Positions 10,450-63,994 of a stretch of DNA of 64,000 bases are shown here, in pieces. Under the pieces are notes generated by a model. The model was not told the origin of the DNA, did no database searches, and saw only the letters and a program-made list of their open reading frames with translations. A program made the translations under genes and the position numbers. Positions within the stretch are counted from its first letter, which is position 1, and every line of letters starts with the position of its first letter. The stretch lies in the sequence record MT661596.1; one strand, 5' to 3'.

Positions 10450-11850
10450 ATGTCAAGCATTATTCAGTTTGGTGAGTTCGTTGAACGTTCTGCTCCTATC
10501 CGCCCATTTCTTAATGTTGGTGCTGGTTTTGATATCCCAACAGGGTCTTACAAACTTGGCAAACACGGAGAGTCTATTTTAAATGGCGGTCTTGCGCCAT
10601 TCACAGCAATCGTTGGTAAAGGGAACACTTTTAAAACAGCTATTGCTTTATTCTGGATGATGCGAGTCATCCAGCGTTACGGTAACTCTAACGCATTACA
10701 CTACGATACAGAGTGTACATTTAGTCCAGACCGTATTAGTAACATTATTGACAGTATGCGTACCGGTGATATGGATGTCGACGCACTGATGGATACAGGA
10801 CGTGTATTTCTTACCGATGACTCCCGTATTAAAGGTAATAAGTGGTTTAAAAACACCATCCAAGATTATGCTGCGATGAAGAAAAAAGACCGTAAGGTCA
10901 TGGGTACGTTACCGTTCGTTGATAACAAAGGTAACTTTATTCCTTTCATGCAACCCACTGTTAATATCGGCGACTCTATGTCAGAAATGAAGTTTGATGA
11001 CTTAGAAGCAAACTACGCTAAGATGGAGATTGGTAAGGGCGAAATGCAAACCGAAGCTATGCGCGTGTCGAACGCAAAGCGTATGCTTATCGAAAAGATG
11101 CAAGGTTATTGTAATGCCGGCGCTATTTATGCAATTGTTACAGCTCACTTGGGTAAAGAGCTTAACATGGATGGTAAACCACAAGAGAAGAAAACCACCT
11201 TCATGAAACAGGGTGATAAAATCTCTAAAGTTCCTACTCAGATTCTTGGGCTACCTAATTCCGTATGGGAAATCTCTACAGGGTCTCCATTGATTCACCG
11301 TGAGTCTAAAGAGTGGTTGTACCCTAACGGTAATGATGTTGATACAAAAGGTAACCCTGATTTAATTACACTTATTGCTAAAAACTTGCGCGGTAAGAAC
11401 GGACCATCTGGTGTTCCTTTTGAATTTGTTATGTCACAGTCTCAAGGTTTGCTGGCGTCACTAACTGAATTCAACCATATCAAAAACTTTGGTCGTTATG
11501 GTTTAGGTGGCAATGACCGTAATTACTATGTTGAGTTATGCCCTGATGTGAAACTTATGCGAACAACTATCCGTGGTAAAATTGATGAACACGCAGAACT
11601 TCGTCGTGCTCTGGAAATCACCATGGAAATGTGTCAGATGACTTTCCTATGGCACAACCGTGACCCTAAATATAACATCACCCCTCTTGAACTTCGTGAA
11701 GGTCTTGAGAAGAAAGGTTATAAATGGGACCAGTTACTCAATACTCGCGGTTGGTGGTGCTACAATGAAGATGCCCACGAAAAACCATTCTTAAGTACCA
11801 TGGACTTACTTCGTATGTATCATGGCGAATATCACCCGTACTGGCTGTAA
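10450..11850 (+). CDS. uvsX: UvsX/RecA-like recombinase
   Basis: Walker A GKGNTFKT (UvsX-type FK[ST]), YDTE, GDSM, IVTAHL. Confidence 0.9.
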   Translation: MSSIIQFGEFVERSAPIRPFLNVGAGFDIPTGSYKLGKHGESILNGGLAPFTAIVGKGNTFKTAIALFWMMRVIQRYGNSNALHYDTECTFSPDRISNIIDSMRTGDMDVDALMDTGRVFLTDDSRIKGNKWFKNTIQDYAAMKKKDRKVMGTLPFVDNKGNFIPFMQPTVNIGDSMSEMKFDDLEANYAKMEIGKGEMQTEAMRVSNAKRMLIEKMQGYCNAGAIYAIVTAHLGKELNMDGKPQEKKTTFMKQGDKISKVPTQILGLPNSVWEISTGSPLIHRESKEWLYPNGNDVDTKGNPDLITLIAKNLRGKNGPSGVPFEFVMSQSQGLLASLTEFNHIKNFGRYGLGGNDRNYYVELCPDVKLMRTTIRGKIDEHAELRRALEITMEMCQMTFLWHNRDPKYNITPLELREGLEKKGYKWDQLLNTRGWWCYNEDAHEKPFLSTMDLLRMYHGEYHPYWL

Positions 11851-11888: not shown

Positions 11889-11922
11889 TCTTTATGGATT
11901 CAGTATAATGGATAATTAAAAA

Positions 11923-12339
11923 ATGATTACTAAAGAGTTTAGAATCGTAGTTTCGAGCGTTAAAGGTTTTAATGATAAAGCTCGGTTACAACACGCGGTG
12001 AACTCATTGTTAGGCGATATATTTGCCATGAATGAGGAAACCACCTCTGACGACGACGAGATGATTGATGATTCTAAAATCCTTGTTATGGTTAATGGAG
12101 AACGTAATACCGCAGCAACGATGTTAGAAGATATCATTCCCGTTACTATAGACACCGAAATTATTAAAGTCGACTGGTCTAAAGGTAAGAAAGCCTTTTA
12201 TGATAACTGCTCTGTCCTTGGCGGTCGTGCAACACACGCTATTGTGTTCTGGGACGACAAAGATGAAGGTCAACGCAGTTTAATCAAAGCATGTCTAGAG
12301 AATGGCGCTAGAGTTCGTTTGTACCCCTCAGCTGTGTAG
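11923..12339 (+). CDS. degenerate SLOG/DUF2493-like protein
   Basis: RIVVSSVKGFND...VDWSKGKKA...AIVFWDDKDEGQRSLI parallels the SLOG domain of the next gene. Confidence 0.55.
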   Translation: MITKEFRIVVSSVKGFNDKARLQHAVNSLLGDIFAMNEETTSDDDEMIDDSKILVMVNGERNTAATMLEDIIPVTIDTEIIKVDWSKGKKAFYDNCSVLGGRATHAIVFWDDKDEGQRSLIKACLENGARVRLYPSAV

Positions 12340-13179
12340 GTGAGCACCATGATAAAGTCCGAAAGTAATATCAATGTATTTAACGCTAACACAACACATG
12401 TTACTTGCACTGTTAATTGCCAAGGACACATGGGTAGAGGTATTGCGTTATACATGCGTAAACGCGTCCCTGGTTTATACGAAGCTTATAAGCGTCAGGT
12501 AGAGTCTGGCGCATTAACAGTTGATAAGTTATGGATATATAAGAACTCATCTCCAGCGGTGCTGTGCTTCCCCACAAAAGATAAAACATGGGAGCCTAGC
12601 AAGTTGGAATGGGTGGAGAGCAATCTTAAAAAGTTACGTGATAACTATAAACAAATGGGTATAACTAGCATCGCTATACCGCCACTTGGTTGCTCTAATG
12701 GTAACCTTGAATGGGGTGATGTTAGAAAGCTTATTTATGATATTTTAAGCGATTGTGACCTAGAGGTTCATATCTGTCTTGGTGAACAAGGTATTCACCG
12801 TAAACTAAGAGTGCTTGTTGCAGGTAGTCGAACTATCACAAACTACAAGTTAACAGAAAACGCCATCGAATTAGCATTCTCTGGATTAAAACTAACAAAA
12901 GCAGAACGTGAAGATGTTGTGTTCATATCTGGTCTAGCGCTTGATGGCCCAGATAACCACGTTATTACTTATTGTCGTAAAAACGGTAATCGGTTAGAGG
13001 GTTACCCAGCCAAATGGAATGAACTCGGTAAACGTGCTGGTATGGTTCGTAATGCTGAGATGGCTAAGGTTATTAATTATGGTGTTGTTGTCTATGATGG
13101 TAAATCCAAAGGCACGAAGAACATGATTGAGTTGTTAAACAAACATGATATAGACAACTTTATTTACATAACCGATTAA
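12340..13179 (+). CDS. Macro domain (DarG/TARG1-like) fused to SLOG/DUF2493 domain
   Basis: TVNCQGHMGRGIA, FPTK, IAIPPLGCSNGNLEW (macro); VLVAGSRT, ISGLALDG, AGMVRNAEMA, YDGKSKGTKNMI (SLOG). Confidence 0.88.
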   Translation: MSTMIKSESNINVFNANTTHVTCTVNCQGHMGRGIALYMRKRVPGLYEAYKRQVESGALTVDKLWIYKNSSPAVLCFPTKDKTWEPSKLEWVESNLKKLRDNYKQMGITSIAIPPLGCSNGNLEWGDVRKLIYDILSDCDLEVHICLGEQGIHRKLRVLVAGSRTITNYKLTENAIELAFSGLKLTKAEREDVVFISGLALDGPDNHVITYCRKNGNRLEGYPAKWNELGKRAGMVRNAEMAKVINYGVVVYDGKSKGTKNMIELLNKHDIDNFIYITD

Positions 13180-16705: not shown

Positions 16706-17779
16706 GTGGCTGGTATTTTAGACTCTGTATCAAAATCAATGCAATCGGCTTCAGACCTTACTAATAACGCTGTGTCTAAGGCTGACTCAGTGTTCACGGG
16801 AGGTTTAAAAGAAAACCTAGCACTCATTGACTCTAGAACCAGAACAGGGATTGAAACACTTAACTCCTTTATGGATGAACAGTTAGGTGAGCTAGCCGGG
16901 CTAATAAAAAGCACCTCATCAGGTGCTGTGTTAATAAAAGACCTATCCCAGTTTATCGACATTAGGAATGGTTTCAAAGTTGACTACGCTGGATTATCCA
17001 GACGATTGGGTAAGGAATTTGGCTTCCCTGTTGATGCGGTAATGAATCTTGCTGATGATGTTAAAAAGGAGATACTTGACACCATTGAGGATTTCAAAAA
17101 TTTATCACTAGATAATGTCATGAACGCCTTGGGTAAAGAGATACCTATCCTTGGTGCCGGTTGGGATGCGGCAAGCACAGTAGCTGACCTTATCAATAAA
17201 TTCTCAGATGGTGATAATGACTTTAATGGGTTTATCGATGAGGCTTCTCAGATTGCCTTTTTGAATGTCATGGTTCGTAATGCTGTTGCTATCGGTATGT
17301 ATACAAGCCTGGAAGATTTCTTAAAGCAATACACTCGAAAAGAAATTGGTATTAATAACCTGGTAGAAAGTTCTCGTATTGCTGTTCGGAATGGTGATAT
17401 CAGAACAGTAAAGGAAATAAACAGATTAGCTGGAAAAGACAGGGTCTATGCTGTAAACCCTAATCTAGTTACTGAAATGTTAATGTTCTTTAGAATGCCA
17501 GGTAAAACAACTAAGGCAGATTGGGATGGGTATCTAGCTGATATTGAATCTGTGTTTGATGATATTAACCCTAACTGGATGGTTGTTAAATTCGGTAAGC
17601 ATACTACATTAAATCTTGCACCTTTTAACACTATATCGGACTCGGCAAGGATGATAATGCAGTATAAGGATAAATACCGTGAACCTATCATGCTTGGTGG
17701 TCTTTACTACAAGAAAGATTTATTATGGATGTTAAGGGAGCAATACCCTTATATGGCTGTTGTTCAAGCTGTTATGTAA
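16706..17779 (+). CDS. probable virion structural protein
   Basis: 357-aa ORF, AGGAGG RBS with GTG start. Confidence 0.6.
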   Translation: MAGILDSVSKSMQSASDLTNNAVSKADSVFTGGLKENLALIDSRTRTGIETLNSFMDEQLGELAGLIKSTSSGAVLIKDLSQFIDIRNGFKVDYAGLSRRLGKEFGFPVDAVMNLADDVKKEILDTIEDFKNLSLDNVMNALGKEIPILGAGWDAASTVADLINKFSDGDNDFNGFIDEASQIAFLNVMVRNAVAIGMYTSLEDFLKQYTRKEIGINNLVESSRIAVRNGDIRTVKEINRLAGKDRVYAVNPNLVTEMLMFFRMPGKTTKADWDGYLADIESVFDDINPNWMVVKFGKHTTLNLAPFNTISDSARMIMQYKDKYREPIMLGGLYYKKDLLWMLREQYPYMAVVQAVM

Positions 17780-17785
17780 TTAAAT

Positions 17786-17838
17786 CAACATAAGAGGTAG
17801 CCCAAACGGGCTACCCTTTATGCTGTATTTTTTTTTTT
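17786..17838. terminator. bidirectional terminator
   Basis: caacataa + ggtagccc-aaac-gggctacc + tttatgctg + T-run, between convergent genes. Confidence 0.8.
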
Positions 17839-61364: not shown

Positions 61365-61400
61365 AAGAAGAAGTGGGTTCGCTCACTTCTTTTTTTTTTT
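61365..61400 (+). terminator. intrinsic terminator
   Basis: aagaagtggg-ttcg-ctcacttctt plus T-run. Confidence 0.85.
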
Positions 61401-61608
61401 AATCTTATAAATCAATTGTTTGTAAAAAATTACATACTAGGTAATACTTATGTAAGGGTAGAGGTTTTTTCATTTTGCTTTAAACCAATATTGCTTTTTG
61501 ATTCCTTTTTGTTGCCATGAAGGTAGGGTGTTAGTTGTTGTTATAACACCCTCTTTTTCTTACACTAAATTTAAAACTTCTGTATTATATACAGTGGTAC
61601 ATTATCAT

Positions 61609-61694
61609 GGGTTGGTACTCAAGTGGTTAACGAGGGCAGACTGTAAATCTGCTGGCTTCGGCCTTCGGTCGTTCAAATCGACCCCAGCCCACCA
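61609..61694 (+). tRNA. tRNA-Tyr(GTA)
   Basis: cloverleaf with class II variable arm, loop CTGTAAA, encoded CCA. Confidence 0.95.
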
Positions 61695-61699
61695 AATAT

Positions 61700-61774
61700 T
61701 GGGGTATAGCTCAGTGGTAGAGCGGAGAGCTGTTAACTCTTAGGTCGTTGGTTCGAATCCAACTATCCCAGCCA
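61700..61774 (+). tRNA. tRNA-Asn(GTT)
   Basis: cloverleaf, loop CTGTTAA, GTTCGAATC, CCA. Confidence 0.95.
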
Positions 61775-61780
61775 ATTAAT

Positions 61781-61857
61781 GGCCCTTTAACTCAATCGGT
61801 TAGAGTAGAGCCCTCATAAGGCTTTAGTTACCAGTTCGAGCCTGGTAGGGGTCACCA
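61781..61857 (+). tRNA. tRNA(CAT), probably Ile2 (lysidine) rather than Met
   Basis: loop CTCATAA; acceptor GGCCC with C4:G69/C5:G68 as in E. coli ileX; CCA. Confidence 0.85.
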
Positions 61858-61859
61858 GT

Positions 61860-62362
61860 TAGTTCCTCCTTGTCAAGAGGTAACGTGGATAATGAGTATC
61901 AAGTTGATTGTTTAGATGTCTTTCAATCAACCGCACTAATCCAATGGATAGTTGCAGTGACTCACGTAATCCTAAGACTGTTATTAATCTGTGTACCATC
62001 GGGCAATTAATAATGACACCAACAACCGAAGGCTAAAGAGATGCCATTGCATCACATGAGTAATCCCAGCAGTCATGTCACCCTATATCCAACCTACAGG
62101 TGATATGCAAAGACTTAAAGGTCTCCTACATTAGGGTCGCTGTGAGGTTACAATATCAAAGGGTGGATATCCTGGTGTTGTTATGAACACCGGTGAATAG
62201 AATGGGTTTATCCTCTTTATAGGTTAGTGCCCACATAACTGTCTTGGTCGTTTGATACGATGACAACCTTTAACTGCGGGGGACTAAAAGTAAGTTACTT
62301 GCACTAACTTGCGAGCAGTTAACTAATTCAAGACGATACACGTATGGTTGTTGGCTGGCTGG
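61860..62362 (+). ncRNA. putative large structured ncRNA (~500 nt)
   Basis: no ORF in the track; many helices including the long-range pair 62019-62027/62346-62354; embedded in the tRNA array. Confidence 0.7.
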
Positions 62363-62454
62363 TCTATATTACTGTGTGTTTCGTGTCTCCATCTAACCGC
62401 GTGGTGAATATAAAGTGAAGAGCACAGCACTCTGAGCAAGCGGTGTCAAATTTA

Positions 62455-62531
62455 GGAGCCATAGTTCAGTTGGTTAGAACGCTACCCTGTCACGGTAGAG
62501 GTCGCGGGTTCGAGTCCCGCTGGTTCCGCCA
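62455..62531 (+). tRNA. tRNA-Asp(GTC)
   Basis: cloverleaf, loop CTGTCAC, GCCA end. Confidence 0.96.
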
Positions 62532-62537
62532 AACAAT

Positions 62538-62613
62538 GTTCTGCTCATCTAGCGGCTTAGGATTACGGGTTTTCAGTCCGTCCACCGGGGTTCGATTCCC
62601 CGGCAGAACACCA
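62538..62613 (+). tRNA. tRNA-Glu(TTC)
   Basis: cloverleaf, loop TTTTCAG, CCA. Confidence 0.9.
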
Positions 62614-62618
62614 AACAT

Positions 62619-62731
62619 GGAAAGGTGTGTTGGCAGAGTGCGTGAATGCGCTAACCTTTAAGTTGGTTAGTATAGGCTGACTCAGAAATGATAGGCTTAT
62701 CGTGGGTTGGAATCCCACACACGTCTTTCTA
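62619..62731 (+). tRNA. atypical class II tRNA-like element (Lys TTT or Leu TAA reading), no CCA
   Basis: GCAGAGTG..GAATGC D-arm, T-arm gtggg-ttggaat-cccac, ~35-nt variable arm, acceptor extendable to 12 bp. Confidence 0.6.
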
Positions 62732-62753
62732 TTTCTTTTTTTTTTTTATCAAT

Positions 62754-62860
62754 GGCGACAGTCTCTTTAAGAGACAAGCACCCAATGTTGTGATTAGAGC
62801 AACCTCTAATATGTCAACGGAATGCGGTAACCCCTGTGAAACTCAGGGTGTCGTCTACCA
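62754..62860 (+). ncRNA. CCA-ended tRNA-mimic RNA
   Basis: ggcgaca/tgtcgtc acceptor, ccctg-tgaaact-caggg T-arm, ...TACCA end; non-tRNA interior hairpins. Confidence 0.6.
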
Positions 62861-62932
62861 AATATGGTTTGCTGTCGAAACGTGAGAGTTAAATAAAATA
62901 ACTTTCCTTGGCGGTAAGCCATTCCCATTAAT

Positions 62933-63010
62933 GGTGGTGTTAGTTCAGTTGGTTAGAATTCAGGAATGTGACTCCTGAGGTCGAGAGTTCAAATCTCTCA
63001 CACCACCCCA
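62933..63010 (+). tRNA. tRNA-His(GTG)
   Basis: G-1:C73, loop ATGTGAC, CCA. Confidence 0.93.
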
Positions 63011-63091
63011 ATTGTGAGTTACCTGATATGAGACAGCTACAGCAGCAAGTCAGGTAGCTCATATTTACACTTATACCGATTAGAGGTCAAA

Positions 63092-63433
63092 ATGAGTGAA
63101 CAGAATCTGGCGACTGTTAGTAAAAATGGTTGTTCGAAAGTTTGTTCAGCTAAAAGTTGTAATGAGTTCATCTTCATTAGCTCTAATGATAAACTAACAT
63201 GTAAGCGCTGTGGCACCCCAAGATTGCTAAGCCATGGCGAAGTCATTGATGCGTTCCCTAGAAAGAACAGTGAGTTCTTTGACCGGGTAAATCAGCTGAG
63301 TCGTTACTCCTTTCATAAAGGCACTGACTCCGTTAAACGAGTGCCCGACCCAGGCGGTAACTATATCGACTACCATGAAGTTGTAGAACTCATGTCATTA
63401 GCCGATGAACGCATTCGTGAATTAAGTAAATAG
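63092..63433 (+). CDS. hypothetical protein with Cys-rich (Zn-ribbon-like) N-terminus
   Basis: CSAKSC...CKRC; GAGG RBS. Confidence 0.65.
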   Translation: MSEQNLATVSKNGCSKVCSAKSCNEFIFISSNDKLTCKRCGTPRLLSHGEVIDAFPRKNSEFFDRVNQLSRYSFHKGTDSVKRVPDPGGNYIDYHEVVELMSLADERIRELSK

Positions 63434-63443
63434 CACCACTATG

Positions 63444-63516
63444 TAGAATGTAGCTTGAGGAAAAAGCAGCCGACTAATAATCGGGGATTTCGCCAGTTCG
63501 AATCTGGTCATTCTAC
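63444..63516 (+). tRNA. atypical tRNA, anticodon AAT (Ile), no encoded CCA
   Basis: acceptor tagaatg/cattcta, D-stem gctt/aagc, loop CTAATAA, T-arm gccag-TTCGAAT-ctggt. Confidence 0.7.
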
Positions 63517-63598
63517 AACCCTATCATGATTGATGATACCACGTAAGAAAAATATTTATTAGCACGTACGCTAATCCATTTTTTACGGGGAATTCATC

Positions 63599-63994
63599 AT
63601 GATAATCGATAAACTCATTAATGCTAAACCAACCTATCTTTATAAGTTAGATGGTGAAGTTTGTAAAGACGAATACACAACACTAGAAGGGTTCAGTGAC
63701 TGTATTAAGTGGCATCTGTCACTTAATAACTTCAATGTGATTGGCGTCTTCTATAATGACCAACCAGAAGATTATTACGGGTCGGGTGTCGTATTAGGTT
63801 ATGATAAAACATCGTCGGAGTGTTTTGTTATTGAGCTAAGCCACTGTTCCTGTTATGGTATTCTGGATGTAGATGCTTGGGAGGATATCCAACCGGAGCG
63901 CTACAGTGTTGAGTTGTTAGATAAGGCATATTCTGAAAACAGACTTACAAGTGAATTAACAGAGCTAATCGAACATTGCATCGCACAGATGTAA
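63599..63994 (+). CDS. hypothetical protein
   Basis: 131 aa; ELSHCSCYG motif common in phage hypothetical proteins. Confidence 0.7.
   Translation: MIIDKLINAKPTYLYKLDGEVCKDEYTTLEGFSDCIKWHLSLNNFNVIGVFYNDQPEDYYGSGVVLGYDKTSSECFVIELSHCSCYGILDVDAWEDIQPERYSVELLDKAYSENRLTSELTELIEHCIAQM

Follow-up and report, generated by a model that had tools for sequence, protein, structure and literature searches.

What fills the 597 nucleotides (nt) that separate two transfer RNA (tRNA) genes in Proteus phage 10 (MT661596.1; 223,209 bp; host Proteus mirabilis)? We analysed a 64,000-nt stretch of this genome, called the window below, in which a window position equals the record position minus 62000; the sequence of window 61500-63600 is the same as in the phage record. 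A first-pass annotation had noticed some 600 nt free of open reading frames (ORFs) between a tRNA(CAT) and tRNA-Asp, and had proposed there a new or highly diverged, large and densely paired non-coding RNA within the tRNA array of a nucleus-forming jumbo phage. Both the observation and the proposal hold: the pairing covaries between two phage lineages, the strand is that of the tRNAs, nothing is coded and no Rfam family matches. Positions 61858-62454 (+ strand) are probably the gene for a ~600-nt non-coding RNA of a previously undescribed family, released by tRNA processing and acting in trans. The RNA gene and its immediate neighbours are placed as follows.

61781..61857, + strand: tRNA-Met(CAT) with encoded CCA; the large RNA begins at the next base
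61858..62454, + strand: structured non-coding RNA gene, whole unit of ~600 nt, filling the tRNA-Met/tRNA-Asp interval
62455..62531, + strand: tRNA-Asp, directly 3' of the large RNA

The gap between the two tRNA genes (61858-62454) holds no ORF longer than 46 amino acids when both strands are considered. Among relatives no reading frame is conserved in the element, and their insertions and deletions wreck every frame in it. Homology with rearranged arrays of relatives resumes at 61855-61856, which fixes the 5' border; the RNA opens with GUUAGUU, adjoining the ...CCA of the preceding tRNA, likewise in L050 and L014, the two loci of a second lineage. The L050 copy exactly fills the space between its own two tRNAs, and the unit is therefore the whole interval, together with the last 90 nt at its 3' end, which the first-pass annotation had omitted. 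The end it had set at 62362 leaves the RNA too short, conservation and helices extending to 62454. The promoter-like ctatattac (62364-72), which it had taken as a possible mark of that end, is neither conserved nor enriched: TATATTAC at 62365 falls inside the span of helix P17, most relatives read CTACATTAC instead, and its four occurrences in the window compare with 4.5 expected. We rejected the promoter reading on these grounds.

Is the element kept in other phages? Close relatives were fetched through two neighbouring proteins: the upstream one of 91 amino acids, present on many public contigs, led to L004-L013 (n=10), and the downstream one of 131 amino acids to L042-L046 (n=5). The element is present in all 15 of the 15 loci covering the site and is 91-99% identical there. 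The second lineage was reached via a 51%-identical homologue of the 91-residue protein, and its neighbouring proteins are 51-76% identical to those of Proteus phage 10. L050 is a 53-kb contig from a phage of this type. Its copy of the element, at 11967-12607, is full-length (nhmmer E = 1e-69 over model positions 3-596) and shares 63% identity with the window copy over aligned columns; the sequence of L014 ends 118 nt into the element.

Does the RNA have a conserved fold? Folded singly, its minimum free energy is -159.7 kcal/mol, versus -155.2 +/- 7.3 kcal/mol for dinucleotide shuffles (z = -0.62), and 29/100 shuffles fold as well as the native sequence. The helices spotted by eye therefore prove nothing alone, and comparison is needed. 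This z-score, together with a narrow distribution, would fit non-functional DNA, the remnant of a decayed gene or mobile element with chance helices. The alignments tell otherwise. Among the close relatives alone (13 distinct sequences, 103 variable columns), 99.2% of the cells of the RNAalifold consensus are standard pairs. Both sides have changed at 12 pairs, versus 6.1 +/- 1.2 in shuffles (0/500) and 0-3 in slid controls, and 36 cells show such both-side changes, versus 10.1 +/- 2.6 in shuffles. A MAFFT alignment of six representatives, folded with RNAalifold, reaches -133.8 versus -95.1 +/- 5.8 kcal/mol after column shuffling (z = -6.7); its structure conservation index is 0.80. Measured against shuffled controls, the fold thus stands out in the alignment and not in the single sequence.

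Three domain covariance models were built from close relatives only and used to align L050 (for the first domain, L014 too).

5' domain, 160 nt: 18/49 pairs changed on both sides; slid controls 0-3; shuffles 0/500; 97.9% of cells paired
Central domain, 178 nt: 14/46 pairs changed on both sides; slid controls 0-4; shuffles 0/500; 98.5% of cells paired
3' domain, 130 nt: 4/31 pairs changed on both sides; slid controls 0-1; shuffles 0/500; 94.1% of cells paired

Homologues of the RNA exist in two lineages, with strong covariation. Variable columns run at 0.175 in stems versus 0.169 in loops, and the stem changes keep pairs. Stems with double changes relative to L050 were also listed by brute force; this list was too noisy and went unused. 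Since stem substitutions preserve pairing in 94-99% of cells, with both-side, pair-keeping changes at 36/126 modelled pairs, since the element is retained in every relative and since indels break every reading frame, the junk DNA reading is practically excluded. The same comparison orients the RNA: 99.0% of cells are paired when read on the + strand versus 89.1% on the - strand, and because G:U pairs make a structure strand-specific, the + strand, the same as that of the tRNAs, is the transcript strand.

What does the fold look like? The comparison shows at least 17 predicted helices, grouped in junction domains, hairpins and a 3' domain, P17-P19. It also shows that the predicted junctions and loops are nearly invariant, the peripheral stems being free to vary in sequence and length.

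61862..61884, + strand: P1 hairpin GUUCCUC / GAGG-U-AAC, one double-change pair and three wobble-change pairs
61887..61972, + strand: 5' three-way junction domain (P2-P4)
61887-97 / 61960-72: P2, closing P3 and P4
61903-10 / 61924-31: P3, gttgattg/caatcaac, 4 pairs changed on both sides
61933-41 / 61947-55: P4, 5 pairs changed on both sides
61979..62015, + strand: P5, long hairpin (gttattaat/attaataat)
62019..62034, + strand: 5' strands of two candidate long-range helices (LR, LR2)
62040..62053, + strand: P6 hairpin GAUGC/GCAUC, invariant among close relatives
62060..62151, + strand: central four-way junction, P7 enclosing P8, P9 and P10
62060-70 / 62139-51: P7, 4 pairs changed on both sides
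62074-82 / 62099-107: P8, catgtcacc/ggtgatatg, 3 pairs changed on both sides
62083..62098, + strand: 16-nt loop of P8, CUAUAUCCAACCUACA, almost invariant
62111-15 / 62120-24: P9, inside P7
62125-28 / 62132-35: P10, inside P7
62172..62193, + strand: P11 hairpin CUGGUGUU / AACACCGG (62172-79 / 62186-93), 5/8 pairs changed on both sides
62203..62233, + strand: P12 / P12b (UGGGU...GCCCA enclosing CCU...AGG), with invariant UUAUCCUCU
62247..62264, + strand: P13, peripheral hairpin of variable length; in its place L050 has a stem-loop ~37 nt longer
62270..62322, + strand: P15 (62270-77 / 62315-22) enclosing P14 (62290-97 / 62305-12), with invariant GCGGGGG
62333..62384, + strand: P17 (ACGAUACAC / GUGUUUCGU, 62333-41 / 62376-84) with an inner extension, spanning ctatattac
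62419..62433, + strand: P19 hairpin AGAG/CUCU, in the 3' tail; CGAG/CUCG in L050 (A:U to C:G)

At the 5' end, P1 is retained in L050 as a 9-bp hairpin of altered sequence. L050 and L014 give the same three-way junction fold, whose strands AGUAUCAAGU, CAGUGACU and AAUCCUAA are invariant. All helix strings quoted by the first-pass annotation were found in place, and several carry compensatory changes. P3 (61903/61924) reads GUUGAUUG/CAAUCAAC in the window copy and GUCAUUG/CAAUGAC in L050; P5 (61979/62001), with L050 counted in, shows both-side changes at 7 pairs, 2 of them within close relatives alone; P8 (62074/62099) also belongs here. The strongest of the quoted helices is P11 (ctggtgtt/aacaccgg, 62172/62186), which occurs among close relatives in at least three versions: CUGGUGUU/AACACCGG, CUAGUGUU/AAUACUGG and CUGAUAUC/GGUGUCGG. 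P6 is consistent with pairing, a GGACAC/GUGUUC hairpin occupying the same place in L050.

Other helices change in step as well. P7 reads AAUCCCAGC/GCUG.G.GGUU in the window copy versus UGGAAACAUC/GUUGUUUCCA in L050, and P12 becomes CGAGC/GCUCG there, with two double-change pairs and every cell paired. In P17 an A:U pair turns into G:C in the L042 clade, and an internal U.U into U:G (L042) or U:A (L050). P15 (ttaactgc/gcagttaa, 62270/62315) gives a mixed picture: one double change (U:A to C:G) speaks for it and two outer-pair breaks in L050 against it, and its inner hairpin is swapped there for a different one. The quoted gtcttg/caagac is invariant, with one mismatch in L050. We discarded tatcaaa/tttgata, which is broken in two clades without compensation. 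Thirteen invariant runs of 7-11 bases lie mostly in junctions and loops; besides the 5' junction strands, UUAUCCUCU and GCGGGGG, examples are ACGUAUGGUU and GCGUGGUGAAU. An 11-nt tetraloop receptor was considered, both of its strands (CCUAAG and UAUGG) being present; the idea was dropped because they are not placed to pair, L050 alters CCUAAG and there is no GAAA loop.

Three long-distance pairings were retained, one accepted and two as candidates.

62085-91 / 62164-70, + strand: PK1, a pseudoknot in which AUAUCCA in the loop of P8 pairs with UGGAUAU in a downstream strand
62019-27 / 62346-54: LR, candidate 9-bp helix ccaacaacc/ggttgttgg, crossing P17 and LR2
62025-28 / 62441-44 and 62032-34 / 62435-37: LR2, candidate, with C:G to U:G changes only and no breaks

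PK1, which the first-pass annotation had spotted, is accepted because in L050 the loop reads AUACCC and its partner GGGUAU, a compensated U-to-C change, and because the rival local hairpin AUAUC/GAUAU is lost there. Its second pseudoknot, AACCUA:UAGGUU, was rejected: L050 retains just 3/6 pairs, and P12b accounts better for the AGG. The case for LR is weak to moderate; 7/9 pairs with three double changes in L050 speak for this long-range helix, and uncompensated mismatches in L004 (U.U) and in the L042 clade (A.G) against it.

How would such an RNA be made? In close relatives the element is always followed by tRNA-Asp or by an Asp/His chimera; in L050 it lies exactly between tRNA-Ile(GAT), at 11891-11966, and tRNA-Asn, at 12608-12684. 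With Met/Asp flanks in one lineage and Ile/Asn in the other, the module is therefore independent of which tRNAs flank it, and the two arrangements show the predicted RNA gene as an independent module set flush between two tRNA genes, whichever they are. The array around it is fluid, neighbouring tRNAs being lost, replaced or recombined while the element stays. In L004 and L042-46 degenerate tRNA-like pieces replace tRNA-Asn and tRNA-Met; tRNA-Glu, the Leu-like tRNA gene and a 109-nt element further downstream are deleted from several relative loci; and in L005, L006 and L045 recombination between tRNA-Asp and tRNA-His has left a chimeric Asp/His tRNA.

Two of these rearrangements can be described closely. 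The ~200 nt that stands in for tRNA-Asn and tRNA-Met (L004 10612-10835, L042 8195-8390) contains a hairpin that immediately precedes the large RNA, together with two degenerate tRNA-like pieces whose T-arm-like sequences are GUAGGUUCAAUUCCUAC and UGUGGGGUUAGUCCCCAC. The Asp/His chimera (L005 11371-11442, L006, L045) joins window 62479 to 62941 via similar 5' halves, with ~460 nt deleted; it scores 42 bits on the Rfam tRNA model and has no ARAGORN call.

Because the element abuts tRNAs on both sides in both lineages, we infer that it is co-transcribed with them and freed by their processing. It is fairly likely that the large RNA would be transcribed within a polycistronic tRNA precursor and released by tRNA-maturation enzymes of the host: RNase P, cutting where tRNA-Asp begins, would create its 3' end, and the upstream CCA-encoding tRNA, through its own 3' maturation, its 5' end. 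This would be the route of the small stable RNAs of the phage T4 tRNA cluster. T4 species 1 and 2 (rnaC, rnaD), also non-tRNA RNAs among phage tRNA genes, are co-transcribed with the cluster, freed by tRNA-processing enzymes and stable. Like them, the element is bounded by tRNA processing sites, in two lineages and with different tRNAs; unlike it, they measure only about 120-140 nt. A predicted terminator upstream (61364-95) and a T-run (62727-50) after the Leu-like tRNA would bracket the tRNA/RNA operon.

The constant contact with tRNAs on both sides would also suit a cis-acting spacer, which would serve the precursor only (by spacing, folding, ordering RNase P/RNase E cleavage or protecting the transcript) and then be degraded; that the element travels with the 5' part of tRNA-Asp in close relatives fits as well. 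However, 600 nt with ~17 helices, invariant loops and junctions and a pseudoknot far exceed the need, other spacers of the same array measuring just 5-12 nt. The element is not tied to one tRNA, as its flanks differ between the lineages, and it stays while tRNAs are lost. We consider a spacer decidedly unlikely and retain an RNA that is probably released and acts in trans.

Several points weigh against this preferred account. The single-sequence fold is no better than that of shuffles, and the domain alignments of L050, being fitted to the model, are biased towards structure. With only two lineages, many helices are invariant and the long-range closure is therefore ambiguous: LR, LR2 and the P17 extension compete. 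Sigma-70 and terminator scans gave results no better than shuffles; no promoter was identified, a sigma-70-like match at 61559-88 being no better than chance. Directly upstream of the element, L004 and the L042 clade have no called tRNA, only a hairpin accompanied by degenerate tRNA-like elements, so the 5' end cannot in every case stem from ordinary tRNA 3' processing. The link to ROOL and GOLLD, discussed below, would be one of genomic context.

Does the element belong to a known family? With Rfam 15, at gathering scores and at E <= 10, both copies returned tRNAs only and no other family on the element; permissive filters were applied to window 61400-63600 and to L050 10700-13800 (2.2 and 3.1 kb). 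The families that the first-pass annotation had listed for an Rfam check (GOLLD, ROOL, OLE, group I/II, RNase P) are all absent at E <= 10 from either copy. The GOLLD covariance model (RF01998) matches neither copy at its gathering score or at E <= 10, nor does the ROOL model (RF03087) at E <= 10. OLE (RF01071) has no Rfam match, and the element is surrounded by tRNA genes and genes for small hypothetical phage proteins, not by oapA/oapB. Group I and group II introns have no match at E <= 10, and the flanking tRNAs are complete genes. For RNase P RNA and transfer-messenger RNA (tmRNA) there was no Rfam match and no ARAGORN tmRNA call on the element. Outside it, a 17-nt tmRNA_permuted match at 62586-62602 lies on the T-arm of tRNA-Glu and is a chance hit. 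In a literature search the element was not described.

Could it be a ribozyme of a new class, processing itself, ligating or acting on tRNA? Its size, the conserved core with variable periphery, the pseudoknot and the invariant junction nucleotides are typical of large ribozymes. On the other hand, models of group I and group II introns, of RNase P and of small ribozymes all fail to match, the neighbours are complete tRNAs rather than exon-like flanks, and no chemistry is suggested; we consider this reading very unlikely.

Few bacterial or phage non-coding RNAs exceed 500 nt with an elaborate conserved fold: OLE, GOLLD, ROOL and a handful more. OLE, an ornate bacterial RNA of ~610 nt with a conserved core, is comparable in size; it differs in being chromosomal in extremophilic Firmicutes, in working with OapA/B/C proteins and in having no phage or tRNA link. 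ROOL has been found non-essential in one strain tested. The setting of our element is closest to that of ROOL and GOLLD, both phage/prophage-encoded, often near tRNA islands and forming RNA-only cages (PMC12286853). With ~580 nt, a highly structured and pseudoknotted fold, no known protein partner and a place near tRNA islands in phages or prophages, ROOL resembles it most (PMC12286853). This resemblance is one of kind only: the element has 597 nt, at least one supported pseudoknot (PK1) and a place in a tRNA array. ROOL occurs mainly in Firmicutes and rumen organisms, whereas this RNA belongs to a phiKZ-type jumbo phage of Proteus. The cage of ROOL is homo-oligomeric, that of GOLLD a closed 14-mer. 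GOLLD likewise is a phage/prophage RNA beside tRNA genes, sometimes directly after tRNA-Met or with tRNAs embedded, a likeness of context and not a sign of homology; it differs in usually exceeding 800 nt and in its universally conserved 3' domain. GOLLD env-38 lies downstream of a Met-tRNA, and GOLLD expression goes up during lysis (PMC12286853).

The shared phage tRNA-island setting, the ROOL-like size and the position 3' of a Met-tRNA, as in GOLLD env-38, might suggest a very diverged GOLLD or ROOL member that the Rfam models miss. Yet neither model matches at E <= 10 with permissive filters in either of two copies that are only 63% identical to each other, and we regard such membership as highly improbable. 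By sequence and setting, the kind of element is a known one, the large tRNA-island phage RNA, and the putative RNA represents a new family within it: its setting is like that of ROOL and GOLLD, its sequence is not.

How far does the family reach? Searching IMG/VR for relatives through the flanking proteins found none. DNA-pattern scans with motifs common to both lineages, over IMG/VR, JGI metagenomes and GTDB genomes, turned up nothing beyond chance hits in coding DNA, as an nhmmer check showed. With blastn, both copies matched Proteus phage 10 only among 50,697 phage records. Neither nhmmer nor the three domain models found a match in 78 kb of Agricanvirus DNA, namely the syntenic 14-kb region of both Ea35-70 and AH06 and a further 50 kb of Ea35-70. 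To date the family is restricted to two related jumbo phage lineages. Within the window, a weak match of the 3' model at 17715-17836 (- strand) raised the idea of a second copy; we rejected it as a terminator-like hairpin between convergent genes.

What might the RNA do? The released RNA would act in trans as a structural RNA, analogous to ROOL and GOLLD, which self-assemble; it might be a scaffold or a self-assembling particle dealing with the tRNA or translation machinery during infection. By this analogy a role of that sort is the likeliest kind, any specific version of it being a tentative suggestion of low probability. A bolder version, rather unlikely in our view, makes the element the third of the large self-organising phage RNA classes, unrelated to the other two and working as an RNA-only assembly or as a new ribozyme; it would come from the tRNA operon of nucleus-forming jumbo phages and act on the tRNA or translation apparatus in the infected cytoplasm.

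Alternatively, the RNA could be an anti-defence or host-takeover decoy, binding and titrating some host component, for example ribosomes, an RNase or anticodon nuclease, or a defence protein that targets tRNAs. The tRNA arrays of phages are thought to protect against cleavage of tRNA by host RNases (PMC13282480); the same array holds several more tRNA-like elements that are not tRNAs, and the invariant single-stranded loops could serve as binding sites. As ARAGORN and the Rfam tRNA model recognise no tRNA-like domain or T-loop inside the element, however, we judge a decoy unlikely. It would be compatible with the favoured trans-acting RNA, not exclusive of it.

For ROOL and GOLLD, the two phage-borne classes, the cage structures have been solved. 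If our reading is true, their niche would also hold, in a phiKZ-type jumbo phage of an enterobacterial host, an RNA of equal size that is related to neither, making the large tRNA-island RNA a recurrent invention. If the third class were real, large RNA machines from tRNA islands would be a general phage strategy, reaching Gram-negative hosts and Chimalliviridae. A cultivable pair, Proteus mirabilis and Proteus phage 10, together with natural variants from which the surrounding tRNAs are deleted, makes the question of function experimentally approachable.

What kind of phage carries the RNA? The MT661596.1 record annotates an FtsZ-like (PhuZ-type) protein near the element, and a neighbouring protein of 450 amino acids has homologues in 291 phage records, which are phiKZ-like jumbo phages, the closest being Erwinia Agricanvirus. 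Proteus phage 10 is a phiKZ-type jumbo phage and a relative of Agricanvirus. Agricanvirus RAY is a nucleus-forming phage, and the label 'nucleus-forming jumbo phage' used by the first-pass annotation is consistent with the data on Proteus phage 10. On this subject a 2026 review of jumbo phages says only that non-coding RNAs are expressed by phiKZ (PMC13282480). In the sister genus, Erwinia phage Ea35-70 (Agricanvirus) encodes an RtcB-like tRNA-splicing ligase (L056 44510-45748); in the regions searched it has a single tRNA and no copy of the large RNA.

The remaining tRNA genes of the array, called with ARAGORN and Rfam models, are listed here with those that flank the element.

61609-61857: tRNA-Tyr, tRNA-Asn and tRNA-Met(CAT), by ARAGORN and Rfam
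62455-62613: tRNA-Asp and tRNA-Glu, by ARAGORN and Rfam
62624-62726: 103-nt tRNA-like gene, by the Rfam tRNA model
62934-63010: tRNA-His, by ARAGORN and Rfam
63443-63517: tRNA-Ile(AAT), by ARAGORN and Rfam

The 103-nt gene scores 36.6 bits on the Rfam model and has no ARAGORN call. Its anticodon loop CUUUAAG would correspond to Leu-UAA, and its variable arm is unusually long (~30 nt); L050 has a counterpart at 11603-11702. Twelve T directly after the gene may terminate the first tRNA transcription unit. Isoleucine is normally read in bacteria and their phages by GAT and modified CAT, AAT being unusual; tRNA-Ile with the AAT anticodon is kept in both phage lineages (L050 12742-12814).

Two further structured elements follow the Leu-like gene. 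The 109-nt element at window 62754-62855 forms a predicted tRNA-like four-way junction (fold z-score -3.8). Its closing stem, GGCGACA/UGUCGUC, has 7 bp; there are three arms, and one loop of 7 nt is T-loop-like. The element has no match in Rfam, is absent by deletion from several relatives and is 91% identical in L014 (1970-2079), where a closing-stem C:G is replaced by a compensated U:A. Between tRNA-His and an ORF of 113 amino acids, window 63013-63063 contains a near-perfect long hairpin of 15 bp (fold z = -5.4), whose core GAGACAGCUA.AGCAGCAAGU recurs in L014 (2197-2221). Downstream of the array and past the window end, L001 10879-11904 (record 126378-127403) is a further ~1 kb without an annotated gene; at the equivalent place in relatives the called ORFs measure only 61-66 amino acids. 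Finally, near-identical phage genomes occur as ~224 kb contigs in assemblies deposited as Proteus mirabilis isolates (L004, L006 and L013; GCA_964209615.1, GCA_040139325.1 and GCA_964210685.1), which suggests that the phage persists in cultured isolates, in a carrier state or pseudolysogeny, or contaminates them.

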